Assembly: GCF_963676685.1 (NCBI RefSeq) | Contig: NC_092351.1 | Location: 372,001 to 436,000 of the forward strand | Length of the DNA: 64,000 bases | Direction: 5' to 3' | DNA from: Mytilus edulis | Lineage: Eukaryota | In this document: positions 3,373 to 23,500 of the stretch, in pieces | How positions within the stretch are numbered: the first letter of the stretch is position 1 | Layout: each line of letters begins with the position of its first letter | Made by a program: the position numbers and the translations under genes | The notes under the pieces: model-generated | Database searches by the model: none | Told to the model about the DNA's origin: nothing | The model's input: only the letters and a program-made list of their open reading frames with translations

Positions 3373-3780
3373 ACATGTATTGTCGAAATGCGCATCTGGT
3401 GCAAGAAAATTGGTACCGTTAATTTTATTACTACCACTGGGTCGATGCCTCTGCTGGTGCACTGTTAGTCCCCGAGGGTATCACCAGCCCAGTAGCCAGT
3501 ACTTCGGTACTGGCATGAAAATACGGATTTTTTGTGTTGTTAAAATTTGCCGTTACAAAATATTAGAAATTATTATAAATTAAGGAATGTATCTCCCTCA
3601 TGCAAAGCTCTGATTCCTTTCACGGATTTAACTATACTTTTTGGACCTTTTGGATTATAGCTCTTCATCTTTTATATAAGCTTTGGATTTCAAATATTTT
3701 GGCCACGAGCATCACTGAAGAGACATGTATTGTCGAAATGCGCATCTGGTGCAAGAAAATTGGTACCGTTAATTTTATTA
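3373..3780 (+). mobile_element. Non-LTR retrozyme-like unit (350-nt period) with hammerhead ribozyme
   Basis: Perfect 58-bp direct repeats at 3373-3430 and 3723-3780, a 350-nt period. The repeats overlap a hammerhead core. Related copies occur at ~31650-31835 (-), ~51085-51431 and ~63560-63690. Confidence 0.85.
3709..3752 (+). ncRNA. Minimal type I hammerhead ribozyme
   Basis: GCAUCA-CUGAAGA-GACA(UGUAU)UGUC-GAAA-UGCGCA-UC/UGGUGC. Stem I is GCAUCA:UGGUGC, the CUGANGA and GAAA boxes are intact, and stem III is palindromic. Predicted cleavage after C3746. Confidence 0.88.
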
Positions 3781-4344
3781 TCTACTTTTGAAAATGCCTG
3801 TGCCAAGTCGAGAATGTGACAGTTTTTTCCGTTCGTTTGATGTGTTTTATTATTTGATGTTACCCTTGATTGAGGACTATTCGAATTTTCCTACTAGAAA
3901 TTTTGTGATTTGACTTTTAAAATTTTTAACATTACGCGTCCTGAATTTTCGTAAAATACATAACACTTGCCTTTTAAACACAAGTGTCGAAAATGTAAAA
4001 GTTTGATAAACTAACTTCAAAATTGTATGGCTTTCAAGATTAATGCAAAAAAAATGCTCTAATTTGATTGGTAGGAAAAACTCAGGTTGAAGTATTGACT
4101 ACAACACGTGGGATGGAGTACTTTAATAACACAAAACCATTGTCAAATGTTAAAAGCTGCCGCGATGAATATTATTGCATAACAAGAACTTTTAACTTAT
4201 TAGAATATTAAATATTCCTTAGTTGTCTGGAGACTGTCTGTTGAAATGTGTTTGTATTGACCTTATGACTTTATGCAGACATTTATAGGCAGGCGTCGAC
4301 AAGAATAAAGGCAATACACGACCTTAAAAAAGCGTGTCGCTTAA

Positions 4345-4533
4345 TTATTTCTCGGTGTTCAATACGACTTACTGGGTACTGGCTATGTGCAGAGTAACGG
4401 ATAATACTACTGGCTATGTGCAGAGTAACGGATAATACTACTGGCTATGTGCAGAGTAACGGATAATACATCTATTTCTCGGTGTTCAATACGACTTACT
4501 GGGTACTGGCTATGTGCAGAGTAACGGATAATA
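4345..4533. repeat. Short tandem duplications (~31-bp unit tactggctatgtgcagagtaacggataatac)
   Basis: Three tandem copies plus a longer duplication, directly visible inside a SINE-like fragment. Confidence 0.8.
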
Positions 4534-5794
4534 CATCCAACCGCAACTCTTGAGATATGTGCCCCCCAAGGCCATACAGGTATGGTCATTTGTCTTCTTA
4601 CCAGCAGTAAAACGTTGACAAAGTGAGGCGCCTGGTCAGAACTCGGACGTTAAATCCGATGCCTCGTGTTTAAATTGATTTAAAGAATACTTTCAACAAT
4701 TCTTTGATAGAATACTTTCAACAATTCTTTGACGAGTCCGTAGCTAGCCAGTTGCAAAATAGTAAAATCTTATTTTTCTGCAGCAATCAAAATTTCACCG
4801 ATCGTCATCCCAGATGGTCTCTTTGACTAGACCGTAAAAATGCATGCACTCGTCCTAAACATGCACGACATATTTGCCACTGGATGTTTACACACCAACA
4901 GTCTAATCAATCTATTAAGATGAACGATCTTGAAACAACAGAACGACATCAGAGTTAACTTAACTTTCTCAATAATTCCTCTTTTTATAAATGAACAACT
5001 TGAGAAATGTTTGGTTCAAAGCATGCCTTCCGATCTGTAAATGATAGCGCTAAACTTTATAATTATATTATAGTGATATTCGATACTTCCTTCAATTTGA
5101 GGTAAGTTTATGTATTGAAAATGTATACTTCTTGATAGGTAATAAGTCCTGCTAATTAAATACATGGGTTATTATTCTCACAACCAGTCGCGAATATTCC
5201 CTCACACGATAAGTGCAATATTATGATTATATTTCACTCACTAACCAAGTAACATATAAGATATACTGAACGCCGAGGAAAATTCAAAACAGAAAGTCCC
5301 AAATCAAATGGCTAAATTAAAAGCTCCTAATCACATCAAACGAATGGATAACAACTGTCATATTCCTCACTTGGTACAGGCATTTTCTAATGTAGAAAAT
5401 GGCTGATTGAACCTGGTTTTAAGGTTGCTTTACATTGCATTTGTATAACAGTTGCATTAAATTTACTACATATTGACAACGATGCGTGAACAAAACAACG
5501 ACATAATTCTAGTAGATAAAAATGTCAAATATACAGCAATCAACATTGTTTTACAATCTTGATCATTAAAAAACCAAACAAATATGTAACAAAGACGGTT
5601 TGTGATTTTCCTGTATGCATGAGGCGGTGCTTATGTATCGAGTCATTGTGCTATTTTAAAACTGGTTCCATTTCTTGTCTTGCATGTTTTGCTTTGTGCT
5701 TGACAAACGTATGCTTTTTAATGTTTCTTTGTTACACATATGACGTGGTTCTGTACTTACACATCCCGTCTTTAAAAAAAGAAAAAAATCACAT

Positions 5795-7412
5795 CCCTAA
5801 TTAACTGGGCATTTAAAAAGTCGGAATGCGAGTACATATGTTCAAACTCTTTTAGATCATTTTTTAGTAGCAATAAACAAAAGAACTATGTCAATTGGAC
5901 ATGCTTTGATACTATTTATGCACTTGAATTTTTACTTGATAACATTTTTGTTCGCTTTGGAGATTCCGTATATCGTCAAGTTATTGGAATTCCAATGGGG
6001 ACTAACTGTGCACCACTTATTGCGGACCTGTTTTTGTATTGTTATGAGTTACAATTTATGACTAAAATTAGCAAAGACCCATCAAAACAACATTTGATAC
6101 AAAAATTTAACAATACTTTTAGATATTTGGATGATATATTGGCTCTAAATAATGACGACTTCAGTATGTATACTAAAGAAATTTATCCTGTAGAACTTAC
6201 TTTAAATAAAGCTAATGATAACAATGACCACTGCCCTTTCCTCGATCTTGATATCTATATCATAAACGGGAAGCTTAATACAAAAATTTATGATAAAAGA
6301 GATGATTTTTCATTTCCTATTGTTAATTATCCATTTTTAGATGGTGACGTTCCCTTGTCACCATCTTATGGTGTTTATATATCTCAACTTGTACGATTCG
6401 CTCGTGTATGTAACAATGTATTAGATTTTAGCGAGAGAAATTTATGTATTACTGAAAAATTATTACACCAGGGTTTTCGATATCACAAACTGGTCAAAAC
6501 ATTTACTAAATTTTATCACCGGTATAAGGAAATAATTCGTAAATATAACTCAACATGCAGACATCTTATACGTTCAGGTATTTCACATCCAAAATTTTAT
6601 GGAAATATTCTTTATAAAGCACAAAAATATCAGTATTCTCCTCAGAAACTAACAAAACCTTTAAATAGACTTATTAAAAGGGGATATAGTTACGATACTG
6701 TTGTCAGGTCATTAAAGATTGCATATTTTGGCTTTAACATTGATTCACTGATAGGGTCTTTGCATCAGAACTAAACACATTTATTTCTAAAAAAACAGTT
6801 GTTGGCATGACACGGGTTATGTTCTTCTCATATATTTTATGATAGTATGATACTAAACCCTTAAAGGGAGGGATTGTACCTGATATTCATATGATGAAGA
6901 CATAATCTTTCAATCAGTTTAATTGAGGTCTGGAGCTGGCATGTCAGTTAACTGCTAGTAGTCTGTTGTTATTTATGTATTAATGTCATTTTATTTATTT
7001 TCTTTTGTTACATCTTTTGACATCGGACTCGGACTTCTCTTGAACTGAATTTTAATGTGCGTATTGTTATTCTTTTACTTTTCTACATTGGCTAGAGGTA
7101 TAGGGGGAGGGTTGAGATCTCATAAACATGTTTAACCCCGCCGCAATTTTGCGCCTGTCCCAAGTCAGGAGCCTCTGGCCTTTGTTAGTCTTGTATGATT
7201 TTAAATTTTAGTTTCTTGTGTATAATTCGGAGTTTAGTATGACGTCCATTATCACTGTACTATTATGCATATTTTAGGGGCCAGCTGAAGGACACCTACG
7301 GGTGCGGGAATTCTCGCTACATTGAAGACCCATTGGTTGCCGTCGGCTGTTGTTTGCTCTATGGTCGGGTGGTTGTCGCTTTGACATATTCACCATTTCC
7401 TTTCTCAATTTT
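5795..7412 (+). mobile_element. 5'-truncated Penelope-like element (RT C-terminal half plus 3' region)
   Basis: The reading frame is open from ~5797 through GIPMGTNCAP...RYLDD...PFLDL...YDKRDDF...YISQLVRF. No C-terminal GIY-YIG before the stop at 6774. The 3' terminus recurs inverted at ~19000-19075. Confidence 0.85.
5995..6774 (+). CDS. Penelope-like reverse transcriptase, C-terminal fragment
   Basis: RT motifs MGTNCAP, YLDD and FLDL in the ORF track. Confidence 0.8.
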   Translation: MGTNCAPLIADLFLYCYELQFMTKISKDPSKQHLIQKFNNTFRYLDDILALNNDDFSMYTKEIYPVELTLNKANDNNDHCPFLDLDIYIINGKLNTKIYDKRDDFSFPIVNYPFLDGDVPLSPSYGVYISQLVRFARVCNNVLDFSERNLCITEKLLHQGFRYHKLVKTFTKFYHRYKEIIRKYNSTCRHLIRSGISHPKFYGNILYKAQKYQYSPQKLTKPLNRLIKRGYSYDTVVRSLKIAYFGFNIDSLIGSLHQN

Positions 7413-8130
7413 AAGAATTAAATATTTCTAACCTACCATCCTCGCCTATCGCTTTCCCTTGTTTTGGATTTTATTTATGTAAGTCAAATCCGCTCATAAA
7501 CGACTGAAAGTTTGAATTGGCTAGATCAACTTTGACTCGAACGTAGAGTCCAGTTTGAATATTATTTATGCATGTAAAATTCTCTCGTTAACGACTGGAA
7601 GTATGAATTGGCTATATCAACATTGAGGCCAAAGTGAATCGTGCGTATGACCTGTGAATGTAAACGGCACAGTTCGAGATATACATTAATTGTGTCGGCC
7701 AAAGCTTCAAAATATTAGTCTTGAGATTGCATTTCTGTAAATATTGACAATGTAATTTGATTTCTCTAATTTACCATTTGATCTGCTTTTACGGCCAAAA
7801 CTGAATCACTTTTACTATGAAGATGTGAAAAAAATCTTTATTGTAGAATTATAAGTGCGTATGCACTACAATTTTTTTCAAAGGTTAAAATATAGGGCTG
7901 TGCGGATATTTTCAAAGTTTATGTGCCCTGAACTCTTCAGTCTTTAGCCATACATCTTTGAAAGAACGTAAATAAGAAGTTAACCTTTCCATCCTGCCGG
8001 TTGTCTACATGCTTATTGTGTATTTCTTCTGAAAAATGTCATTATGTTTAAGAGAAACACAAAAGAAGGGCACACAGGAAAAATCATTAGGTAATATGAA
8101 AGACCAAAATTTAATAATAGAACAATATTA

Positions 8131-8628
8131 GGTCCGAGACCACAATTGTCGTCCCTTGATTTTCGTTGTTCAATTGTCGTCCCTTGATTTTCTTCGTTGT
8201 TCAATTGTCGTCCCTTGATTTTCTTCGTTGTTCACGAATATAGTCCATAGTCCCTAGTGTTGACAGTGGGTTACTTGCCAAATTTATTTCTCCATGTTTA
8301 ATGCCTCAAATTGCAAATAGGGGGATGAGATTACACTGTAAGAAAAATTGGGTCCAGAATTTTAAAGGAAAGTAGTGATTTGGTCCAACTGAAAAAGGTT
8401 GAAAATTAGCACTTCGGAAGCTGTAAAAAGATTTCAAGACGCCCTAAACATAAAATTGTCCATATTTTGAGTTAGAGCCGATGAAGTTTTCTATAATTTT
8501 GATATAATTTGTCCCAAAAGTAGTACAACACACTGTAAAAGTTTCTTTGAGAAAGCGCAGGTGGGATTTTTTAAATTTTCATTTATGTTCTAAAAGAAAT
8601 GCACTACGAAATAATTGTGTTCTCGGAC
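8131..8628. mobile_element. MITE with GTCCGAGA-CACAATT terminal inverted repeats
   Basis: ggtccgagaccacaatt (8131) pairs with aattgtgttctcggac (~8612-8628). Internal ~30-bp tandem at 8143-8234. Partial inverted copy at 19987-20200. Confidence 0.6.
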
Positions 8629-8893
8629 TAATAGCGGAATTGTTAAGTATTGAGTCACGTTACATGTAACAAAGAAAGTTGAGGTACTACGGACAAAGCA
8701 AATATGCAAAATATCGCAAACAACACAGCAATGACGGGATGTATAACATGTATAAGTACAGAGACACGTCAGTGATATTTTTGTAAAGAAGACGATAGAA
8801 TAATAATAGCGCTCCCGACGAACTGTGTTTGTAGGTTGCTACCTGCTCAAGAATGCCATTTTTATTTCCGCACCTTGCAGTTCCCTTAAGGTG

Positions 8894-9436
8894 CTAAAAT
8901 TGAACGCGCTTGGCTTGACGATGAATGATAATATCGTCTTCACTTTCTGCATCAAAATCCTTGACTATGCTTGTCTGGTACACGTAACCACCTCTATTCG
9001 ACAGGAAAGCTTGGAAACCTGTCATGACCGAGTTGAATAGGTCCATCGAACGAGTGTAAAGCGATCTTTAATCAAAATTGGATCGGTCAAGTTGTGTACC
9101 ATTTGCAGATGGCGCTTCAATCTGGTTTGCTCTATTCTGCAGTACGGGCATACTAAGGCTGGAGCAGGTACGGCGCCACGGTTTTTTTATTGCATGAGAA
9201 GTTCGTCAGTCTCTTCTTCAGGAGAGGGATAGGGGTCGGGGTGGATGAGGATGAACTCAACACCCCGACCCTCTATCATTTCCACCATCTCTTTCGTTCG
9301 TTCGAAGGTGGCGATCTTCAATTCTTGTTTGTAATAGTTATATTCTTCTGTTGACGGATGACTGCTTTCCAGCAGCCTATTCCATTCCTTCCTGCTTCCT
9401 AGAACCTTTATTATGTACGTTGTCATTGCTTTATAT
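8894..9436 (-). pseudogene. Second element-encoded unit: exon with acidic stretch, C2H2 zinc finger and short terminal ORF
   Basis: Acceptor ttttcAG at 9437-9439. Frame YKAMTTY...ELLMQ*(9187) continues in frame as KNRGAVPAPALV-CPYCRIEQTRLKRHLQMVH-NL (9022-9186). An overlapping 50-aa ORF MDLFNSVM...KRVQF* spans 8894-9046. AATAAA at 8861-8866. Confidence 0.55.
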
Positions 9437-9544
9437 CTGAAAAATAGAGGAAACAATAATATGGAAAAAAACCCATGGTTAACCCTTTGCGGTGTCAGGA
9501 CCCAAGCAAACAGCCGACAGTTGTCCCATTGGCTATGAGATACG

Positions 9545-10190
9545 CTTATGCGTAGCATCACCGTGAAGTACCACCACAGCAGTGCGCTCCTGGACATGGC
9601 ACTCGCTGCATGGTAGTACACGGTAACCCCCACTCATAGGCCTTTCTCTAACCCTATACATGCAGAATAAATAAGTAAAACTATATACAGATATATACAC
9701 AAGGCAACGACAATGTACAAGATATATACAAGCAAAAGATACCCCGGTCCACCCTGCCCGCCTTTAACAGGGATAGGGATAGGCTTATGCGTAGCATTAC
9801 CGTGAAGTACCACCACAGCAGTGCGGTCTTGGACATGGCACTCGCTGCATGGTAGAACACGATAACCCCCACTTATAGGCCTATCTCTAACCATATACAT
9901 GCAGAATAAATAAGTAAAACTATATACAGATATATACACAAGGCAACGACAATGTACAAGATATATACAAGCAAAAGATACCCCGGTCCACCCTGCCCAC
10001 CCTGCCCGCCTTTAACAGGGATAGGGATAGGCTTATGCGTAGCAACACCGTGAAGTACCACCACAGCAGTGCACTCTTCAACATGGCACTCGCTGCATGG
10101 TAGAACACGATAACCCCCACTCATAGGCCTATCCCTAACTCTATACATGCAGAATAAATAAGTAATACTATATACAGATATATACAACAG
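9545..10190. repeat. ~240-bp tandem repeat, ~2.7 copies
   Basis: Units begin near 9545, 9784 and 10032. They explain the duplicated ORFs in the track. Confidence 0.9.
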
Positions 10191-10199
10191 ATATACACG

Positions 10200-11090
10200 T
10201 GGTCGGTGTCTCTATCACGAAAAAAAAAATCCCCTAACCCACTCCCAATTGGTCGTAGTCTCTATCACGAATAAAAAAAAAATCCCCTAACCCACTCCCA
10301 ATTGGTCGTAGTCTCTATCACGAATAAAAAAAAAAAAAATCCCCTAACCCACTCCCTATTGGTCGGTGTCTCTATCACGAATAAAAAAAAAAATCCCCGT
10401 TCCCACTCCCTATTGGTCGGTGTCTCTATCACTAATAAAAAAAAAATCCCCGTTCCCACTCCCTATTGGTCGGTGTCTCTATCACTAATAAAAAAAAAAT
10501 CCCCGTTCCCACTCCCTATTGGTCGGTGTCTCTATCACTAATAAAAAAAAAATCCCCGTTCCCACTCCCTATTGGTCGGTGTCTCTATCACTAATAAAAA
10601 AAAAATCCCCGTTCCCACTCCCTATTGGTCGGTGTCTCTATCACTAATAAAAAAAATAATCCCCGTTCCCACTCCCTATTGGTCGGTGTCTCTATCACTA
10701 ATAAAAAAAACAATCCCCGTTCCCACTCCCTATTGGTCGGTGTCTCTATCACTGGTCGGTGTCTCTATCACTAATAAAAAAAAACAATCCCCGTTCCCAC
10801 TCCCTATTGGTCGGTGTCTCTATCACTGGTCGGTGTCTCTATCACTAATAAAAAAAAAATCCCCGTTCCCACTCCCTATTGGTCGGTGTCTCTATCACTA
10901 ATAAAAAAAATAATCCCCGTTCCCACTCCCTGTTGGTCGGTGTCTCTATCACTGGTCAGTGTCTATCACGAATAAAAAAAAAATCCCCGTTCCCACTCCC
11001 TATTGGTCGGTGTCTCTATCACTAATAAAAAAAATAATCCCCGTTCCCACTCCCTATTGGTCGGTGTCTCTATCACGAATAAAAAAAAAG
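10200..11090. repeat. ~53-bp minisatellite, about 16 copies
   Basis: Unit tggtcggtgtctctatcactaataaaaaaaaaatccccgttcccactccctat with a variable A tract. The first copies carry ccctaaccc. Confidence 0.95.
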
Positions 11091-11225
11091 TCTCAGTCCG
11101 TCAGTCCCTCATTCCATTTACTAATTCTCTCCTTCGGTGCCTTCTTCTTCAACTTCTTCTGTCTCGTGTCCTCAGCTGGCCTTCCCGTCTGCAAAAATAA
11201 AGATACCTTTAGCCAAGGCATTGAT

Positions 11226-11339
11226 AATGTTTCCCCCCCTTATATCTTTTATGCGTAGCATTTTCACGGGCTATGCCTGTGGTTTATGGGTAGCATTTTC
11301 ACAGTTTATGCGTATGTTTTCATCGTGTATAATTTTCTG
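11226..11339 (+). repeat. Left copy of a ~115-bp intronic inverted repeat pair
   Basis: Reverse complement of 15381-15499 with few differences. Confidence 0.9.
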
Positions 11340-12825
11340 CCCGATCTTGTGTGTTTTATCGAAGGTCCGACTGACTGAGTTTACTAATTAAAGTACTTAC
11401 CTTTACCTTACTCCTCTCTACAACCAGCTCCTCTAGATTCTGCTCTCTCTCCGCCCGAGAGGGGACCACACCGCTGCCTCCGGTCGCCTGCTGTTGTCCT
11501 TCTGCTGCTGCATCCTGAAATTTGATAGTGAAATTTAAAAAAACATTAAGTAACATTTTCACAAAAAAAAGAATCATTTTCACGGGAATAATATATTTGT
11601 TGCGACTAGTAAGCTAATTTACCTTGTAGGCCTTGCCAAGTTTGTCAAGGACAGCATGACGGCTTTCCACTCGCCGGGACTTGTCGTAGTACCGGTCGGC
11701 AGTCGCTACATTGTGCGCCATGTGCTTGGCCAGCTCAATGGCTTCTTCCCGGGTGCCCCCGCTCTCTCTGAGGGTGCTAACCGCCAGCTTCCTGTTCCGA
11801 CTGGCGGTTAGGGTTGTCTTCTCCATCCCCTCTCCCTCGAAGAATCTATCCCATTCTGTCTGGACCAGCTTACTCATTGCCTGTAATAAAAATCACACTG
11901 ACATTATGACCTCAACGAATAATTTTGACCTCAACGAATAATACATAATACGACCGATAGCAGACCGCGAAATAAAAACACCGTCATTTACAATGTTCAA
12001 ACACATAATGTATGTCTTATGTAAATATACGTACCGAGGGCGTAAGGAATTCTCCCTTGCCCGTCAGGAACAAGTAAGGCTGGGGCTTCTCTGGTGGGTT
12101 GACTGGTAGGCTCAGGTGTGTCGCGTACACCTGCATGAGTCCAAGGAGGTCAGCAGCTATCCTCACATGGCAGATCTTGCCAGAGCGCGCCTCCTTGTGC
12201 TCGAACACCTGTAAGAGAGGGATTGATATTAATACGATAGACAGTAATACTTAATCACCTGTAAGAGAGAGATTGATATTAATACGATACACAGTAATAT
12301 AATTACTTAACACTTAATACCGAAAACTTATAATTTATTGTGATTTACCTCGATCTCGATATCAGTCCCATCTACTGCTACAGCCGACAGGACATCAGCC
12401 CGCCTCAAGTGGGTTATGTCCCCAGCCCTCTTGGCGTTACTCAAGAGTAACTGGAGACATAAGATGTTCCGGGCGTCCATCTTGTCTGCCCTGGACAGCT
12501 GCTCTCCTCTCTCTGCCTTCTCGATCACTCTCCGGGCTCAGGTGGGTCGTTGTCAGTCCAGGTACTTGGCTATCTGCGCTGGCTCCAGATCCACAATGTC
12601 CTCGCCACCTTGGCGATGAGGACATCCTCCTTCAGGCTCTTGCTCACCGTCTTCATTGTCTCGGAGAGCGTGGTGAGCTGGTCTGCAAGGAGACGCAGAT
12701 GGCGGAGCCAAGTACCCTTTCCTGCAAGGAACTGCAGGAACCCAGCCAAGCTGTGGAGGTATACCCGCTGGGTAGCAGGCTTCACTCTGAAAAAGAAAAA
12801 GAGGAAATAACTGACACTGCATTAC

Positions 12826-13393
12826 GTATGCGTAACATTTTCACATGTATACTTACAAGTTTCACTTATGCGTAACACTTTCACATGTATACTTACAAAG
12901 TTTCACGTATGCGTAACATTTTCACATGTATACTTCCAAGTTTCACGTATGCGTAACATTTTCACATGTATACTTACAAGTTTCACGTATGCGTAACATT
13001 TTCACATGGCGTGCAACATTCCCCCCCAAACACAACGTAAAGGCTTACAGGGTATGATTGACTTACCTGTCTTCTTGGAGGTGGCGGTTGACCTCACCGT
13101 TCAAGGTCCCGATCTTCTCCAGATCCAGGAGCGCCTGCCTCGTCAGCCCTGTGGGCAACCAAAACTTCACAGCCGTCAAGTGGCTCTGTGTGGTGGTAGC
13201 CTTGCGGGCTATCCCACACGCTCTGTCGGTCATCGTCTTTCTGACAGGGAAAACAACATTTGTATATATATGCATTTCTTATGCGCAACATTTTCACATG
13301 TATACTTAAAAGTTTCACGTATGCGTAACACTTTCACATGTATACTTACAAGTTTCACGTATGCGTAACATTTTCACATGTATACTTACAAGT
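12826..13393. repeat. Intronic ~39-bp tandem arrays (12826-13005 and 13280-13393)
   Basis: Unit cacgtatgcgtaacattttcacatgtatacttacaagttt on both sides of exon 13067-13240. Confidence 0.9.
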
Positions 13394-15380
13394 CTTGGGT
13401 CGTCAGCGACGTAAAAGGCCGGCCGTACCCCAATTCTTTCCCACTGACAATCATACCACGTCATATTTCAATGTATTTTTTTTCTCTCTAAAAACGCAAT
13501 CAAAGGTACCAAAATACAAACTCACCCGTAGTCTACTAGTGCCTGTTGTAGTTCCTGCTGAGCCTGGGTGCCTTCCTCGTAAGGCACTGCTCCCTAGATG
13601 GCCTCGCGGAACTCTTCGCTGTCCTTCTCCAGCTTGTGCACCGTCTTAAGGTGCACATCCATGCGGATCGTATTTGACCCGCACAGACCACACTCAAGAC
13701 GGCCACCGTAGGTCCTGTTGCCTTGGTCGCGGGGTCTGCCCTTCGTCTTCACAGGCACCGCCTCGGCGTCAGGGTGACACACCGTCATGTGACGTCTCAG
13801 GTTGACCACCGCAGCAGTACACCCTTCAATTTGGCACTCCCTGCGTGGTCGTTTCTGAAAATAAATAAAACAAAAACATTTATGTGTAACATTTTCACAT
13901 GACGGGTAGCAATTGTCAGAAAAATACACAAGTCCGTCCACCGAATAAAGTTTCAGGTCCGAAAATTTTTCCCATTTATGTGTAACATTTTCACATGACG
14001 GGTAGCAATTGTCAGAAAAATACACAAGTCCGTCCACCGAATAAAGTTTCTTGAGGGGTTCGATATGTTTTACACTGATAGCCCTTAAGGGTATATATAG
14101 TATATAATAAAAAATATATTAACATAAAACTCACCGTGTCACCCTTATACACCTTCGTGGCGGCTCTCCTCGTCCTTCTACGAACTGGCTCGTCAGCTGA
14201 CTGTGAGTCATCAGCTTCAGTGTCAGACCCTGACTCCTCCGCTGGCACGTCAGCAGCAACAGCTGGAACCTCAGTTCTACGAACTGGCTCGTCAGCTGGC
14301 TGTGGGTCATCAGCTTCATCAGTGTCAGACTCCGACTCCTCCGCTGGCACGTCAGCAGCAACAGCTGGAACATCAGTTCCAGCGGAACTAGCCTCAAACT
14401 CCGCAATAGTGCGGGCGACAAACCCCTTGGCCGAAGAATCTGCAAGAAAAGTGCGAACATTTATAAGTAACATTCACAAAATTTGTTTTTTTCTCGGGCC
14501 GCCTTGTTTTTTTCTGCGGCTTCCCTCTGTCTCCAGCCGTTAACCCGCGGCTCTCGCTAATTTTTTTTTTTTCACATTCAGTTAATTTTCAAATCTAATC
14601 CGTCCTACAAATGTGACAACCGCGTTCACAGTAAGTCAAGTTAACGATTGTTAAACTTACCTAACAGGTCCTTCTCCTCATTTGAAACCTCCTTCCTCTT
14701 CTTGGCAGGAGGTGCCTCCTCGTCCGAAGGACTTTCTACCGCTGTAAAAGGAAATAGTCAACTTTCAATATTACTTGTATCATTTTCACACCTAAAAATA
14801 TATTTTCATAATTTGATATATTTTCATGCCCGTCACTTCGATGTCTAATGATAAACTTACCGCTGTCGTCCGATGAGTAGTCATCAGCGCTGGGTGGCGG
14901 GACATACTGGTCACAGGAGTCCTCCCCTGATGTCATGTCTGTTGACTCTGTAAAAAAAATATTTGCCATGTACATCTACAGTATTCACCATTATGCGTAG
15001 CATTATCACAATTACGCGTAGCATTATCACAATCATATAGAACAGGAAAAAAAAAAAAAAAAAAAAAACAAATACAGTATTCACCATTATGCGTAGCATT
15101 ATCACAATTACATACCCTGCTTCTCCTGTACGATGTCAGCTGCCTCTGGGAAAAACACCATAGACTTCCTCCTGGACGATCTCCTCTCCCCCCTAAACTG
15201 GCGAACCTTCGGGGCTGGGCAAGCTGCTGGCGCCGGCGACTTCTTGAAACCCTTCAACATCTTGCTCTGCTGCGCCAGCAGGTTCCCAAGGAAGGATACA
15301 CCCTTCCTTTCTTCCTTCTCGTCCAGCTTGGACCATTCCAGGTCCAAGTCCTGCTATCCTTTCCCTGTAAGAATAAGTAT

Positions 15381-15499
15381 CAGAAAATTATACACGATGA
15401 AAACATGCACAGCCGAAGAAACTGTGAAAATGCTACCAATAAACCACAGGCATAGCCCGTGAAAATGCTACGCATAAAAGATATAAGGCAGGAAACATT
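15381..15499 (-). repeat. Right copy of the ~115-bp intronic inverted repeat pair
   Basis: Fills most of intron 15365-15529; inverted relative to 11226-11339. Confidence 0.9.
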
Positions 15500-17014
15500 G
15501 GGGCCGATATTTAAATACAATGTACCTACCAGAGTCAGAGTCCTCAAGGTACGCCTCCTGTACCACGTCCCTCAGCTGGCTGGTCCTGGTCTCCTCCTTC
15601 CGCGTTGGGGTCATGCCCTCCTTCCGCGTTGGGGTCGGTGTGACCCTGGTCTCCTCCTCCACCATGTCCTCTTCTGTAAAAAATGAAAGGAAAGATTAGC
15701 AAGGCATGTTCACGTACTTAACAGTGATAATGATTGACAGTGTTGGCTAATATCTAAATACAAGGTACTCACCGGTGACAGGCTCTGTCTTGGGCACTAT
15801 CGGGTCAATAGGGACCGCCTGGAACAAGACGGGGTCGGCCGTGCCAGCGTCCACCTCCACCTTGAGGTCAATAGGGACCTCCATCCTCTGGCCGGCTCCC
15901 GCGTAGTTACCTGAAATATATAATGTGTACATACATTGCACAACAGTTCTCTATGAAGTTTGCATTACCTGAAAAAAAAATAATGTGTGAATACATAGCA
16001 CAGTAGTTCCCCATGAAGACTTGAAAGTAAAGATTTAACATAGGAGGTAAAGGTACTCACCTATAGAAAGGTAACTGTCTGTCCAAGCCTGGACGCGGTT
16101 GACTGCACCGCCGACTCTCAGGCTTGCCCGTCCCAGTCCTGCCCGCAACTGCCTCTTCCCCAGAAACAGGCTCCTAACAGGCCGTCCCACACTTTTATTG
16201 AGGGCAAACCTGCTAGGCATACCCGCTAGGATGCCTGATACGCAGCGGGTCCTGTCCTGCCGTGCCCACCACGCTGCCTCCTGTCCAATCCTCTGCTGGT
16301 CCATCCTTCTGGCGTCCTGGACGCGGGCCAGCCACCAAGGCTCACTAGGCAGTGGGATGTTCACTCCGGGGGTAACCCACTTTAGCTCCTTCCACACACC
16401 ATCCCGAAGAATGGTGTGCTTCCGGGCCACCCTACTGGTCTCATGGTGATCCTTAATGATCACCCTGCTAGATTCTTCCATTAAAACCTGCAATGTAAAT
16501 GTTATGTGTAAGATTGGAGAATATCCGCCCGCTGCCTCTCGATGAAAAATCCTCGGACATAGAAATTTCTCCCCGCTGAAATTATTTTTTCCCCGGCTAA
16601 TCGTACTACCCGCGGCCGCCCGCTAAAACGTCTTCCGCGGATCTTCGATGAAATGAAATGTAAACGTTATGTGTAACATTTTCGCTGATTTTCAAAAGTG
16701 TGGACCGATTTCAACAAGTAACAGTGTAGATCGATACTTATAACCCTACTCACCAGCCTTCTAGTTATCAGCCCCAGCTCTACCGTGGGCTTCTCCGTGG
16801 TCGGGATCCCCCAGGTCCTCATCTGTGACATCGGCATCTTCGTCGGCCGCCACTCGCATCCGGACCTCTGGATCTTGGTAACGGGTACATCCCGCACCAC
16901 TACCTTCGGCACACCATCTTGAAAGATGATGTGCTTCGGGCCTGTCCCACTCGTCAGTCCCGTGGAGGGGTCCTCTATTATCTGCAATATAAACGTTATG
17001 TGTAACATTTTCAC

Positions 17015-17620
17015 TGAATGAAATTTTTTTTCCCTGGTCGTCGCAAGAGGCCGCGGTAGCCCGCTAAAAGATCTTGCGATGTACCTCGTAGAAAAATCCT
17101 CGGACGTGAACATTTCTTCCCGATGAATTTTTTTTTTGTCCCCTGGTCGTGGCAAGAGACCGCGGTAGCCCGCTAAAAGATCTTGCGATGTACCTCGTAG
17201 AAAAATCCTCGGACATGAACATTTCTTCCCGATGAAATATTTTTTTTCCACTGGTCGTCGCAAGAGGCCGCGGTAGCCCGCTAAAAGATCTTGCGATGTA
17301 CCTCGTAGAAAAATCCTCGGACGTGAACATTTCTTCCCGATGAAAAATATTTATTTTTTACCCCTGCTAGTCGTAAGACCCGCGATCGCCCGCTAAAAGC
17401 CAAAGGCCACGATTAATGAAACTTTCCACCGCTGCTTGTAGCAGGGGACGGACCATATCTACCCGCGCCTCGTACAGGCAGAAAAGGAAAGGCCGCGACC
17501 GATGAAACTGTCCGCCGCTGCTTGAAGCAGGGACGAACCATATATACCCGCGCCTCGTATCAGCGGAAAGGGAAAGGCAGAGGCCTCGATCAATGAAACT
17601 GTCAGCCACTGCTTGTAGCC
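17015..17620. repeat. ~119-bp tandem (x3) followed by ~90-bp tandem (x2-3)
   Basis: Repeated ccgcggtagcccgctaaaagatcttgcgatgtacctcgtagaaaaatcctcggac, with a degenerate copy at ~16530-16650, then repeated gatgaaactgtccgccgctgcttg units. Confidence 0.85.
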
Positions 17621-17738
17621 GGGGGGCGGGGGACAATTTTCACAATTAAACTCATTGGGAAAGTAAAAGTTTTATGCGTAGCATTTTGACCGATACATTT
17701 AACAAAATTATGTGTAACATTTTCACAATTAAACTTAT

Positions 17739-17768
17739 GGTTAGGGTTTAGGGTTAGGGTTAGGGTTA
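17739..17768 (+). repeat. Short interstitial telomeric-type repeat (TTAGGG)x4
   Basis: ggttagggtttagggttagggttagggtta. Confidence 0.85.
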
Positions 17769-19254
17769 CAGATACATGTAACATTTTCACAGAAGGTAAG
17801 ACCGGTGCTCTTTTACTTTTTAGTGTGGATTGCCTGAGACCTCGTACTAATGTACATCGCTCGGGCAGGCAGCAATCAGTATTGGCAATTCCTATCCACG
17901 CCTTTCTCGTTAAAGGTTCCCGAATAAAATGACACAACTCCTATCCGTAACATTTTCACATTTTAAGCGTAACAATTCACAAGACCCGAACACGTTTAAC
18001 CGTTTTACTTATTTATTTTTGATGGGTTTCGTACTTTGAAATGAGGGAATTGTCACGGCCTGCAAGAAGACTACGCGCAAATATTACCGGCGCCTTTCTC
18101 TTTATCCGTCGCCAAATGAAATAATGAACTCTTATGGGGAACATTTTCACATCCCTATGTGGAACCCTTCACAAGACAGCAAGAGGGAAGGCCGTTTTAA
18201 TTTTTTTGTGTAATGGGTTTCGGGCTTTGAACAGCGGGGTATTTTCTAAACCCATAAGGCCTACGTAGTCCTCGATTGGCAGAGGCCTGGCAACAGCCGT
18301 TACTCCTCGGTACATGGGGGTGGGATGTCACTGTTTGCAAATCGACCAAGTCCCAAAGTAGCCTTTTCACCCTTGACTCAGGGCTGCATTTAAACACGAT
18401 CGAAAATCATGGAAAGGTGCCGGAGAAGGGGTTGTTCTACTCACCGTGGGCGTCGCTTGTCGCACGTGTACAGGGGCCTATCCCTTGTAGTTGAGGATAT
18501 ACGGGGATCGGCGAGAAAGTTGACACGGCACCCGATACACCATGCTATCCGATCGTGAACTGTTCCCGAAGTCGAGAGCTACCGATGCTTCTTTCCAGTT
18601 TTCCCGTCCGTGAACAGACTAAGTTTCTGCGAGTTTCTAAGTTTTATGCGTAACATTAGCCTACAGGACTTTAAGTAAAAGTAGTTAAACAGGTTTTTTT
18701 CCCATTGTTATGTGCTGTACCTGTGCAATAATTTCACGGCGTGAAACCGTGAAATTTCGGATGAAGTGATCACTGTCAAGTGTTGTAATCTCTTTTAAAC
18801 GTTAACATAAACAATGTCATTCCAAAAACATTTTTGCCTCGAAAAACACGAAAACTGGCACAGAAACACTTCTATATGTACTGAATGTGTAAACTTTTTA
18901 TCAGGATCTGAACATCATAATATTCAGTATGCTAAAAATAAGTGTTATAAAAGCTCGGACGGCAACTAGCTTAACATATTTTGTATAGTTTCATCACTCG
19001 AAAAATAAAATTGAGAATGGAAATAGGGAATGTGCCAAAGAGACAACAACCCAACCATAGAACAGACAACAGCATAGTCCGTCAGAGGTATTTTTATCGT
19101 TCGGCTGCTGTCTTATTGACGCATGTGCAATATGTCCGATTATATAAATCCTTTGGATCATAGTGGGTGCAATATGACCAATTAAGTTAGAAATACGACG
19201 ATGAGGTATGAGTGCCAAATGAGACATCTTTCCATTCAAGACACAATCTAGTAA

Positions 19255-19960
19255 CGTAAGCTTTTGCAGTGTCAAAAACTCGTTGGAAGTACAATGATAA
19301 ATTGCTGGCATATATTGGTGATTTTGAATCTGTTCAAAGTTTTGATTTTTTTACGCTATATACCTCTTTGCCTTATATTCTTATTAAGAAAAAATTCACA
19401 CACCTACTTAAATGGACATTTAAAAAGTCAGAATGCGAATACATATGTTCCAATTCTTTTAGGTCATTTTCTAGCAGCAACAAACAAAAGAACTATGTCA
19501 AATGGACATGCTTTGATACTATATCTGCCCCTGAATTTTTACTGGATAACACTTTTGTTCACTTTGGAGATTCCGTTTATCGTCAAGTTATCGGAATTCC
19601 AATAGGGACTACCTGTGCACCACTTATCGCGGACCTGTTTTTGTATTGATATGAGTTATAATTTATGACTAAAATCAACAAAGACCCATCGAAACAACAT
19701 CTGATACAAAAACATGGGTCTCAATAATGACGACTTCAGTATGTATACTAGAGAAATTTATCCTGCTAAACTTACTTTAGATAAAGCTAATACTAACAAT
19801 GACCACTGCACTTTACTCGATCTTGATATCTTTATCATTAACGGGAAGCTTAATACAAAAATTAATGATAAAAAAAGATAATTTTTCATTTCCTATCCAT
19901 TTTTAGATGGTGATGTTCCCTTGTCACCATCCTACTCGTGTATGTATCAACGTATTATAT
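19255..19960 (+). pseudogene. Degenerate Penelope-like RT fragment, same family as 5795-6774
   Basis: FDFFTLYT, GIPIGTTCAPLIADLFLY*. The YLDD region is deleted. Confidence 0.85.
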
Positions 19961-20518
19961 TTTAGCGAGAAAAAAATTATGAATTGGGTCCGAGACCATA
20001 GTTATTTCCTAGTGCATTTCTTTTAGACAATAAATGAAAATAAAAAAAAAATCCATCTGCGCTTTCTGAATAATATTTTTACAGTGTGTTGTACTACTTT
20101 TGGGACAGATTATATCAAAATTATAGAAAACTTCATCAGCTCTAACTCAGAATATGGACAATGTTATGTTAAGGGGGTATTGAAATCTTTTGACAGCTCG
20201 GCCAAAACAGTCCTGTGTTAAACTTGCCTTGTTCCGAAAATTAAGGTTACCTTCTGAACTTGATGGAACGTTGACAAAATAATATAAAACGCAGTCAAGA
20301 CAAATCAAAAAGTATAAAGTTAAATTTGTACCTGGAATAAATCTCTCAATTTTGATACACTTTTCCCCTTTCTGTGAGTGACCATAATTTCTGTTTGCAG
20401 TGACCAACTCGAAACCGCTCTCGTCCATGAACCTTAATCAAATACTGAAGTACTGAACATCGGATGACCACAAGTTCTTGTGGATGGTCCCAAACACTTG
20501 TCTCAGAAAAAAAGGCAA

Positions 20519-23500
20519 TGGCTATTTTGCCGGCTCCGGAAAATAGCAATCTATATAGAGTTTTGCTATTTTGCAGGTCCTATTTCAGACTTTTAATCCG
20601 ACTATTAGAAATAAAAAATATTTGTATGAAATTATGTATATACAAATCGGATATAGGGCTAAATGTCAATAAGTTTTTAGTCTTTACTTTGACTTCATGG
20701 TCTGGTATATTAACTTTTGGTGAACTGCAATCATTAAATTACATGTACATACGTTAATTTCTGTTAAACGTTCGAAGATAGAAGACGAAAAACTTAAAAT
20801 AAATGATAAGTTCGACTCATATGAAGACATACAGCAGGTTTTAAAGGAGTTTGAAAAAGATAACTATGTTCAACTATGGAAGCGGGATTCGAGGACAATC
20901 AAATTCATGAAAACCAGAGCACCAAACAAAAATTAAACAATAGGCTACTCTATGGTCCTATTAAGTATTGCTGTGTTCATGGAGGCACACAAAACTTCAT
21001 CTACTGATAAGTCTAGTTATTTCATCATTTCATCTGTATCTGTGTATATATACGTGGAAGATACTAATCCTGATTTTTTTTTATACATGTACATTCATCT
21101 CTGTTTTTTTCTTGTAACTAAATAAATTTCAAAATATTTGAGTCGAATAGCAACATTCAACATCTTTCAATCGAAGTTACCCTAAATTTGTGTATACTTT
21201 GCACTAACAAGTACGTTTTGGTGTAGTGCGTAAAATTGCAAAACTAAAAAAAAGCAAATAAGTGTTAAATGTGTTATTCTCGCTTATCATCGAATAACGA
21301 ATAAACTATTTAAGAACCCTATCCAACAACCTTTTTTAAGATGGTCTATCTTCTTGCAGGTCAACGTCCTTACCAGGCTACATTCAAGCATAACTGTCTT
21401 TTGTTCATTCAACTGCATGTGTACGACTCCAGATGGACAACAGCTAACAGTGTCGAAATACAACAATGAACATAATCATGAAATCAATGAAATTTGTTTC
21501 AAGTACTTGCCAAAACAGAGACATCATTCTATCTTCCGAAGAAAGACAAGATGTAGAAAACATGCTCAAAGTAAACGCTAACAAAAAGATGCTACAGAAC
21601 TTTGTAATGCAGAAAAATGAAAAGAAAGTTGTTTTGAAAGATGTGCACGATATACATTCAGGCATAAAGAAAATAGACAAAGATAGACCAAGTCAACTTA
21701 ATGATTGGGTGCTGTTGTCGAATATGTCACGGATGGTGACAAAAACCTGAAAGCAATCTTTCAAGATGAAGCTATTAAGTCAACTTTCGAACAGTTTCCC
21801 GAAATTAAACTTATTGATGCGACATACAAGACAAACAATCTGCGACTGTCACTTTATTTCATAATTACAGTTGATGGTAATGGGCAGATTGAAATTGTTG
21901 TATTGTTTCTGTTAACTGAGGAGGATCAAGATTTGTCGCATCCATCATAGAACTGTTTAAAAATACATAAGACTTCATGGGAAAATGTTTTAAAAGTTAT
22001 ATTAACTAATAAAGATATGTCCGAACGGAATGTATTGAGTTTTAAAAGCGATGCCTGATGCTAATCTCCAGTTATTCACAGTCATGTGCTATGCAATTTC
22101 AGGAGAGAGATAACACCTGAAAAACTTGGTATCACTCCCGGGTAAAAAAATCAGCTCCTTAATTAGAAACTGTACAGAAAATATCTTACTGAAGATCGGA
22201 GGAATAATATAAATCTTGTTATGAAAAATTGACATCTGAACGGTACCGTAGTCTCCTATTTCAACAGAAACTGGCATATTATAAGGTCAGAATAGGTTTA
22301 CGGACTTAAAGATGGAGTCAACCTTGGAAATAAAACAAATAACAGAATCGAAAGTATTAATGATAAAGTGAAGTCCGTACTGACTATCCATCCAAACCTG
22401 CCCAGAATTCACAGGAAGTATTCTGATCGCCATAAAATCATTAAGAACAGAACGAGATCATAAAACTGTTGGCATGTTTCTGACGAAACCGGTTAATGCG
22501 TCTGATACGGAATCTGCCGAATACAAATACCAAGAACTGTTAACGCCGTACGCACTTAGGTATGTATTGAAACAAACTTCAAACTGTAGCGATGTCGTAT
22601 TGAAAAAGTAAGAGAACTGGACAGGTGGAGAATTTTGGTGTGCGGAGAGTAAACTTAAAGAGGGGCAAGTGTAGTGGAATTCATTTGTACATGCACATTC
22701 TTCAAAAGTATGTTTCTCCCATGTAGACACAAACTTTGAGATGTCAACAATGAAGACTTGTTTCAGATGAATGGAATATACCAGAGATAAAACTTAGGCA
22801 CATATACTAGATCTCATAGACTTTTTTGTTCATTTCCCTCCGAAGAATTAAAATCACGATCTTCTATTATTAGCATTCCAAAACGTAGCCGTAAATTGTC
22901 ACAAAGTGAGAAATACAGACAAACACAGCTTCATGCCCAGCAGATTGCAACTTTGTTTTCGAAAGCAACAGGAAACGATTATTTAAACAAAACATCCACT
23001 TTACAAAATATATTAAAACATTGAAATGATGGAAAGCATTGTTTAGTGGTGGAAGTTCTTGAAGTGGAAACATCATTCTGATCAACTGGAATCACAAAGC
23101 GAAGTTTTAGAACTGACTGAATAAGTGGAAAGTATTACCGATAGTCACTGTAGTGAAAGTGGTGAAATCGAACCAGAGAGAGATGACATTAAACTCAAAC
23201 ATAACTAATTGAACTCTGCTGAAACGATTTCGAGTATAGCTTTACCACCTACAATGAAAAAGCGCGGGAGACCAAAGGGAATTACACAAACTGTAAAAGG
23301 ATTACCTAAATAGCAGGCACGAAAGACAAAATGTATTACTTTTGATCAAAAAGCGTCCAAGGAGACTGATGTGATTGTATTAGAATGGTTTGTTGGAAAA
23401 GAAATAGCAAAGTCAGCTGTTGATGACGGTCTTGTGATAGAAGAGGAACACGTAGAAACTCGCCCTGAAATGGTTTCAACTTTATGTTTAGACAAACTAG

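Follow-up and report, generated by a model that had tools for sequence, protein, structure and literature searches.

A decaying, expressed gene of an apparently undescribed, Crypton-like zinc-finger/recombinase family in Mytilus edulis

Tyrosine-recombinase elements of eukaryotes are few and poorly understood. In animal Cryptons, a DUF3504-type recombinase is the sole recognisable domain and terminal repeats are absent (Kojima and Jurka 2011, PMC3212892). The DUF3504 host genes (KCTD1b, KIAA1958, ZMYM2/3/4, QRICH1, WOC) no longer have the catalytic Tyr or the second Arg, and are conserved, intact and single-copy (PMC3212892). The window analysed here, a 64,000-nucleotide (nt) stretch of the Mytilus edulis genome (contig NC_092351.1; G000:C8:372001-436000 of a 1.37-Gb assembly), carries on its minus strand a 15-exon gene for a protein with two zinc fingers followed by a tyrosine recombinase, the latter recognised by its predicted fold. 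The window copy is expressed and decaying, and it belongs to a new, Crypton-like family of zinc-finger/recombinase genes. It is probably a genuine multi-exon nuclear gene of M. edulis, now a pseudogene, whose copies arose by duplication and whose lineage descends from a Crypton-like element.

Similar to Cryptons (CryptonA, CryptonI), the gene has a eukaryotic tyrosine recombinase as its sole enzyme and no reverse transcriptase (RT). Low copy number and a lack of terminal repeats are also common to both, introns are found in some Crypton lineages, and the intronless relatives of the mussel gene resemble Crypton elements. Unlike in Cryptons, the mussel recombinase is not DUF3504 by hidden Markov model (HMM), two zinc fingers precede it on the N-terminal side, the gene has 14 conserved introns, and its mobility is unproven; its His-Tyr box, HMAHxxxTADRYY, looks closer to the bacterial Xer/integrase type by motif reading. 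The DUF3504 host genes likewise have recombinase-derived domains in intron-containing nuclear genes, some with zinc fingers, but the mussel family keeps its catalytic residues, its copies are broken and it evolves near-neutrally. DIRS, Ngaro and the Starship 'Captain' (DUF3435) also encode a eukaryotic tyrosine recombinase. In contrast to DIRS and Ngaro, the mussel island lacks RT/RNase H, split direct repeats and inverted terminal repeats, and the only inverted repeats in it are an intronic pair (11231-11317 / 15409-15495). It differs from the Starship Captain in having no DUF3435 match and in being a 9-kb unit without cargo in an animal host rather than a giant fungal element.

The gene was tested as an explicit 15-exon model, in which all 14 introns are GT-AG and the reading phase is maintained from exon 1 into exon 11. 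The model was compared with spliced contigs, which are Logan contigs of run X6 (its species label is the same as that of the RNA sequencing (RNA-seq) runs for this species). The exons, from 5' to 3' of the gene, are as follows.

16754..16981, minus strand: exon 1, 76 codons; preceded by an AG acceptor, without a start codon; X6 joint 16485/16752
16061..16487, minus strand: exon 2, N-terminal region of unassigned fold; no Pfam match
15773..15910, minus strand: exon 3, from the model and X6 joints
15530..15673, minus strand: exon 4, Thr/Pro/Arg/Lys/Glu repeat tract whose length differs among copies
15116..15364, minus strand: exon 5, with an in-frame TAG at 15355-15353
14861..14947, minus strand: exon 6, acidic
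14661..14741, minus strand: exon 7, with PPAKKRK, similar to a nuclear localization signal (NLS)
14135..14439, minus strand: exon 8, acidic tract made of a 102-nt tandem repeat
13526..13854, minus strand: exon 9, two CCHH-type zinc fingers (Pfam zf-C2H2_11, weak), with an in-frame TAG at 13596-13594
13067..13240, minus strand: exon 10, linker ahead of the core-binding domain
12349..12786, minus strand: exon 11, helical core-binding region and first putative catalytic Arg (NAKRAGD); broken
12035..12208, minus strand: exon 12, putative beta-hairpin Lys (EHKEARSGK)
11623..11880, minus strand: exon 13, second putative Arg (SRNRK), then His and the putative Tyr nucleophile (HMAHNVATADRYY)
11401..11514, minus strand: exon 14, from the model and X6 joints
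11093..11188, minus strand: exon 15, with a TGA stop and an internal alternative donor, 11122/11121
9187..9436, minus strand: additional 3' exon, from the X6 transcript; acceptor TTTTTCAG, 82-codon open frame

Joints in the X6 contigs exist for all 14 predicted introns (CT..AC on the plus strand), and two of the junctions are crossed by raw RNA-seq reads of X24. As the assembly contains no intronless copy of this gene, the joints represent RNA and not a retrocopy. Two RefSeq models have junctions that match the exon model. One is P0092 (820 amino acids, aa), which belongs to a close copy of the gene at C8:42.43 Mb (copy A). The other, P0067 (XP_071124366.1, "uncharacterized protein isoform X3 [Mytilus edulis]"), is a 257-aa tail at the window locus and is identical to the translation of the tail of exon 11 through exon 15, window-specific residues included. 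The window copy is transcribed and correctly spliced. An initial annotation of the window, made from its letters alone, had proposed the 15 minus-strand GT-AG exons, and these stand on the exon model, the X6 joints and the RefSeq junctions. The same annotation called the gene hidden, which it is not, RefSeq having annotated parts of it, and confined it to 11093-16981, which is too narrow: an X6 contig reaches 622 nt 5' of exon 1 (beyond 16981), and donor 11122/11121 within exon 15 is joined in X6 to exon 9436-9187. Since exon 1 begins behind an AG acceptor and has no start codon, one or more 5' exons that were not located must precede it. The 24-residue leader of another model, P0091, was searched for in the window and not found.

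The C-terminal part of the protein is a tyrosine recombinase by its predicted fold. The AlphaFold model of P0067 has a pLDDT (per-residue confidence) of ~90 over residues 1–165. Its top Foldseek matches are all tyrosine recombinases (E from 7.6e-5, probability 1.0), and VIA-align gives Z values of 13.5 for XerA, 12.8 for XerH (root-mean-square deviation 2.6 Å, 148 residues) and ~12 for Cre. Structure comparison of the homologue P0036 yields a Z of 13.4, and the Mercenaria homologue, with its upstream helical domain included, aligns with XerA and XerD over both domains. The fold comparisons thus favour what had been read from the motifs, a tyrosine-recombinase protein behind two zinc fingers, and the motifs quoted at the time (PPAKKRK, the two fingers, NAKRAGD, EHKEARSGK, TASRNRK and HMAHNVATADRYY) are all present.

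The best structural matches, XerA, XerH, XerD, Cre, Tn1549 integrase and lambda integrase (Z 12–13.5), cover the whole catalytic domain and have their catalytic residues in the same order, with a His-to-Tyr spacing of 9. This order is canonical in the mussel protein: Arg (NAKRAGD), Lys (EHKEARSGK), Arg (SRNRK), then His and Tyr (HMAH...RYY). In the alignment of exon 13, the borders of which are preserved in homologues from other species, R30, H56 and Y65 do not vary, and the family consensus contains Arg I and Lys. Compared to these prokaryotic and phage recombinases, the mussel protein shows an identity of just 13–20% and reaches the threshold of no HMM, it is spliced and nuclear-targeted, and it possesses zinc fingers and long acidic tracts. 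Furthermore, the His of the HxxR box is replaced by Ser or Thr in every aligned member of the family (SRNR, SSIR, TLIR, TRAR).

Judging by these features, the intact ancestor would have been a protein of ~1,100 aa with an unassigned N-terminus, acidic tracts, an NLS, two CCHH fingers, and core-binding and recombinase domains. It would bind DNA via the fingers and the core-binding domain. The fold and the residues suggest that DNA would be cut and rejoined through a 3'-phosphotyrosine on the Tyr of RYY, with assistance from two Arg (in NAKRAGD and SRNRK), the Lys in EHKEARSGK and the His in HMAH. Recombinase-based tools could profit from the zinc-finger targeting of the family, provided that an intact member proves active.

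Sequence profiles do not capture this relationship. Pfam finds no family on single exons beyond the weak zf-C2H2_11 in exon 9 and none on the 820-aa P0092. Phage_integrase (PF00589) has a gathering threshold of 27.1 bits; the best score, for the relative P0065, is 20.1 bits (E 6e-4), that for the intronless relative L025 (described below) is 13.4 bits, and P0067, P0092 and the single exons give no match. DUF3504 is absent at E up to 0.01–1 from the exons, P0067, P0082, P0092, P0065, P0041 and L025, and the DUF3435 model matches none of the family sequences searched, in agreement with the earlier separation of this gene from a CryptonA relic. NCBIfam and PHROGs searches of the family return nothing meaningful, and a family HMM profile run against the PDB sequences produces chance matches only. 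An exhaustive phmmer search with exon 13 against 1.84 billion representatives finds just 66 proteins, mostly fragments; the named matches come from Mytilus galloprovincialis, M. coruscus, Pinctada imbricata and Mercenaria mercenaria, and one is auto-named "Tyr recombinase domain-containing protein". With long queries, protein searches bring up nothing beyond chimeric models of Mytilus coruscus, two M. edulis models and a small number of unnamed proteins. No relative was detected among the viral contigs scanned, and the literature searched contains no description of this family. The bivalve family is rare and, judged by the literature and by the Pfam, NCBIfam and PHROGs profiles, apparently undescribed. 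There is an annotation gap here, in that a clear recombinase fold with its catalytic residues is missed by all three profile collections and members are labelled 'uncharacterized'.

The window copy itself is a transcribed pseudogene, in which two TAG, two TGA and a 16-nt deletion part the fingers from the catalytic domain. The exon 5 TAG is not found in the close copies A, B and C nor in the X1 and X6 contigs, and the exon 9 TAG corresponds to CAG in X6 as well as in copies A and B. In exon 11, 16 nt are deleted at the GTGGCGAG direct repeat (12608-12601), and two in-frame TGA (12555-12553 and 12540-12538) occupy positions at which relatives carry Gly and Arg. X6 has a different base in each TAG (13596 A>G, 15355 T>A) and contains the 16 nt, and at most one of its TGA sites may differ (the piece has 10 differences, and the 9 that are listed fall at other positions). 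The model P0091, which belongs to another M. edulis assembly, has GLT and HLS in a shifted frame across the TGA sites, which requires both TGA stops in that assembly. Taken together, the TGA evidence from the window, X6 and P0091 means that at least three individuals have the catalytic domain severed from the fingers. A further intron by which the exon 11 stops would be skipped was considered and rejected: in that region the X6 contig runs on without interruption, and homologues have coding sequence throughout.

The stops and the 16-nt deletion explain why RefSeq calls just the 257-aa tail at this locus. They are also incompatible with the ~1,080 open codons that the initial annotation had counted, and the matching phases it described hold from exon 1 into exon 11. 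The exon lengths add up to 3,242 nt (2 modulo 3). The annotation of the locus is thereby corrected to a transcribed pseudogene, not an active element.

Five close copies of the gene, the window copy among them, exist genome-wide at 86–98% identity. The window copy and copy C form an inverted pair on C8 (342–349 kb, 383–389 kb), and copies B and D a mirror pair on C10 (155–162 kb, 194–196 kb). These four have more than 10 kb of flank in common, and their blocks lie at most 0.4 Mb from the start of chromosome-scale contigs. Copy A has only 9539-18675 in common with the window, and its flanks are unrelated. As for the copy pattern of the Crypton class, one of the five copies (A) sits in unrelated flanks, with homology ending at 18675, and the other four share theirs. 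All five close copies are broken, as are the older paralogues on C8, C10 and C7, and of the 11 or more loci in this assembly none proved intact. The ratio of nonsynonymous to synonymous substitution rates (dN/dS) among the copies is 0.55–0.77, and exons are conserved no better than introns. The recent copies are ascribed to segmental, inverted and inter-chromosomal duplication, not to demonstrable transposition. The family is small, with five close copies, several older broken paralogues and relatives in other bivalves.

Substitutions between the window and copy C (5000-23200) rise from 1.0% in the right flank to 3.0% in the left and 4.6% in the gene. Such uneven divergence points to a mosaic history, for which gene conversion among the inverted arms is one possible route. 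It was rejected as evidence of an independent insertion, the left flank being nearly as diverged as the gene.

The same genome contains intronless open frames in which two fingers, the core-binding domain and the recombinase follow one another as in the 15-exon gene, with another domain C-terminal to them. Their fingers are of the C-x2-4-C...RH(L/M)xxxH type. A nearly intact intronless gene, interrupted by one TAG, is found in L025 (G000:C8:16212001-16222000; C8:16.216 Mb) at 3554-6924 of the minus strand. Its recombinase motifs are NGKRAGD, RRHKVITKPC, TTTRARK and HMAHSPAVADRWY, its C-terminal domain is common to the unnamed proteins P0061, P0064 and P0065, and its GC content is 0.53; it is a candidate Crypton-like element. 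On C9, a tandem array (L026, G000:C9:30,547,000-30,590,000) comprises ~26 units of 1,651 base pairs (bp), which contain partial open frames of the intronless zinc-finger/recombinase family that are 85–88% identical to the copy at C8:16.216 Mb. Each gene copy also has a decayed fragment of the intronless family directly downstream, which in the window is the following.

8807..9216, minus strand: decayed intronless-family fragment, directly downstream of the gene; zinc fingers and the following helix, with stops

The intron positions around exons 11–13 are kept in the paralogues and in three contigs of other species (41–57% identity). The intronless relatives in the same genome, their matching finger-recombinase layout and the GC-rich coding sequence argue for a Crypton-like origin. 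We infer a lineage that started from a Crypton-like DNA element, gained its introns long ago and then had a mostly vertical and duplicative history. With the same domain layout in an intronless and a 15-exon form, the family is a test case for intron gain by a transposon gene and for domestication versus decay.

The part of the locus that recurs alone at copy A, and the repeats within it, are listed below.

9539..18675, minus strand: 9.1-kb unit, also found alone at C8:42.43 Mb (copy A); approximately the transcription unit plus flanking tandem arrays
9539..11089, no strand: tandem arrays (239-bp unit x2.7, 53-bp unit x ~16) in the intron between exon 15 and the additional 3' exon
17023..17624, no strand: tandem arrays (109-bp and 86-bp units) immediately upstream of exon 1
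11250..18150, minus strand: span of the motif GTGAAAATGTTACRCATA, 22 copies (up to 2 mismatches), 21 of them in gene sense

The left end of copy A falls within a tandem-repeat unit. Terminal inverted repeats and hairpins were sought at the island ends and none were found, nor were direct repeats between the ends besides the internal motif. An empty site for copy A was not found either, its flanks matching other repeats only. The initial annotation had proposed looking for copies, shared ends and empty sites; of these, five copies and a unit standing alone at copy A were recovered, with no terminal repeats and no empty site. Within 9.2–18.7 kb there is no other enzymatic domain, and the absence of RT and gag from the island, noted earlier, is confirmed. 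The GC richness of the 'island' reflects GC-rich exons (0.58) among introns of host-like composition (0.35), and the idea that the island is foreign DNA by composition alone was rejected on the same ground.

The motif GTGAAAATGTTACRCATA(A), 19 nt long, occurs 22 times against 0.05 expected, with additional sites at 9546-9558 and 18644-18658. It is present in eight of the 14 introns and in the upstream region, and in seven of these eight introns the last copy lies 21–67 nt ahead of the acceptor. In introns 9 and 10, the motif is part of a 40-bp tandem unit that also carries GTAAGT. There are 29 exact copies in the 1.37-Gb genome, 27 of them in the five gene copies and one beside a paralogue; homologous loci of other species do not have it. 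Copies in direct orientation are positioned at most 20 nt from the right end of the unit and on the initial bases of the left array. Possible roles for the motif are a binding site of the recombinase or the zinc fingers, i.e. a built-in set of recombination sites, or a dedicated splicing signal.

Several readings of the locus have to be weighed against each other. A chance array of open frames, or an artefact of assembly, deserves practically no credence. The stops and a frameshift are all that would suggest it, and it is refuted by spliced RNA contigs that fit every junction, by the independent RefSeq models, by homologues in other genera and by a confident fold model with its structural match. 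A host gene, i.e. a domesticated recombinase or DNA-binding factor of which the reference individual and some others have null alleles or decaying duplicates while a functional copy resides elsewhere in the population or in unassembled sequence, would account for the multi-exon structure with intron positions conserved across species, the expression with precise splicing, the low copy number, the polymorphic TAG stops and 16-nt deletion, and the 820-aa RefSeq model of copy A. We nevertheless consider it rather unlikely, taking into account that at least 11 loci of the assembly lack an intact member, that the two TGA stops recur in other individuals, that every annotated protein from M. galloprovincialis, M. 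coruscus, Pinctada and Mercenaria is either a fragment or a chimera, and that known domesticated Crypton genes lost the catalytic residues that are kept here (PMC3212892). Such a gene should be a conserved, intact, single-copy and syntenic orthologue under purifying selection; here, copies and paralogues of the assembly are broken and dN/dS is near neutral. Less probable still is a (recently) mobile, autonomous, intron-rich DNA transposon of ~9.1 kb (9539-18675) that moves by its own recombinase, possibly via the 19-nt motif. It would fit the discrete unit at C8:42.43 Mb, the complete set of catalytic residues in the family, the GC-rich coding sequence within an AT-rich genome, the directly oriented motif copies near the right end and at the start of the left array, and transcripts of another individual that are free of three of the five lesions; Crypton-type elements, too, are typically low-copy and without terminal repeats (PMC3212892, PMC4157794). 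Against it, only five close copies exist, four within duplications, and every one is broken. The ends show neither terminal repeats beyond the internal motif nor a hairpin, copy A starts inside a tandem-repeat unit and has no detected empty site, the unit roughly equals one transcription unit, and 14 introns at positions conserved across species would be unusual for an active transposon. Thus, of the large mobile DNA element originally proposed, the 9.1-kb island alone at copy A stands and the mobility is not shown; a mobile element of ~10 kb is possible but unproven.

The reading that we prefer, a multi-exon gene of Crypton-like descent that multiplied by duplication and became a pseudogene, has its own difficulties. 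Plain segmental duplication would not predict an exact 9.1-kb unit at an unlinked site without its flanks. The catalytic residues are kept between Mytilus and Mercenaria at 39% identity, and their retention over such deep divergence needs long-term selection, which a dead family or a recent history cannot explain. The link to the intronless family consists of a common architecture and ~40% identity over short stretches, not of a rooted tree. No intact member was found, the 5' end of the gene was not located, and cutting and joining of DNA by the protein is a prediction from its modelled fold. Assembly error may account for single lesions, though three of them recur in independent data. A broader proposal, to which we give limited credence, is that the gene and its intronless relatives constitute an undescribed superfamily of animal tyrosine-recombinase elements outside DUF3504, DUF3435 and PF00589, one lineage of which became intron-rich, kept its catalytic residues and carries the 19-nt motif in its introns and at its unit ends.

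A few further observations concern the unit and its surroundings. Copy C is missing the 65 nt (window 18658-18722) that directly follow the last motif copy, and homology to copy A stops 17 nt further on; copies C and A therefore have two independent breakpoints at most 20 nt from one motif. The intronic inverted repeats, 11231-11317 in intron 14 and 15409-15495 in intron 4, are 87 nt long and 91% complementary, and they surround exons 5–14. Each arm contains motif copies, and the pair is present only in copies of this gene. To the right of the unit there is a degenerate, reverse-transcriptase-like frame (19269-19646) without a Pfam match, and the shared right flank holds one more feature.

21705-21947, plus strand: MULE / ZSWIM1-3-type transposase fragment (Pfam E 4e-17), outside the unit

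The additional 3' exon has no Pfam match and is unlike the C-terminal domain of the intronless family. Its 82-codon frame has 10 more open copies genome-wide, at 54–95% identity and with no recombinase gene beside them, e.g. at C8:78.74 Mb, at C8:79.39 Mb, on C11 and on C2315.

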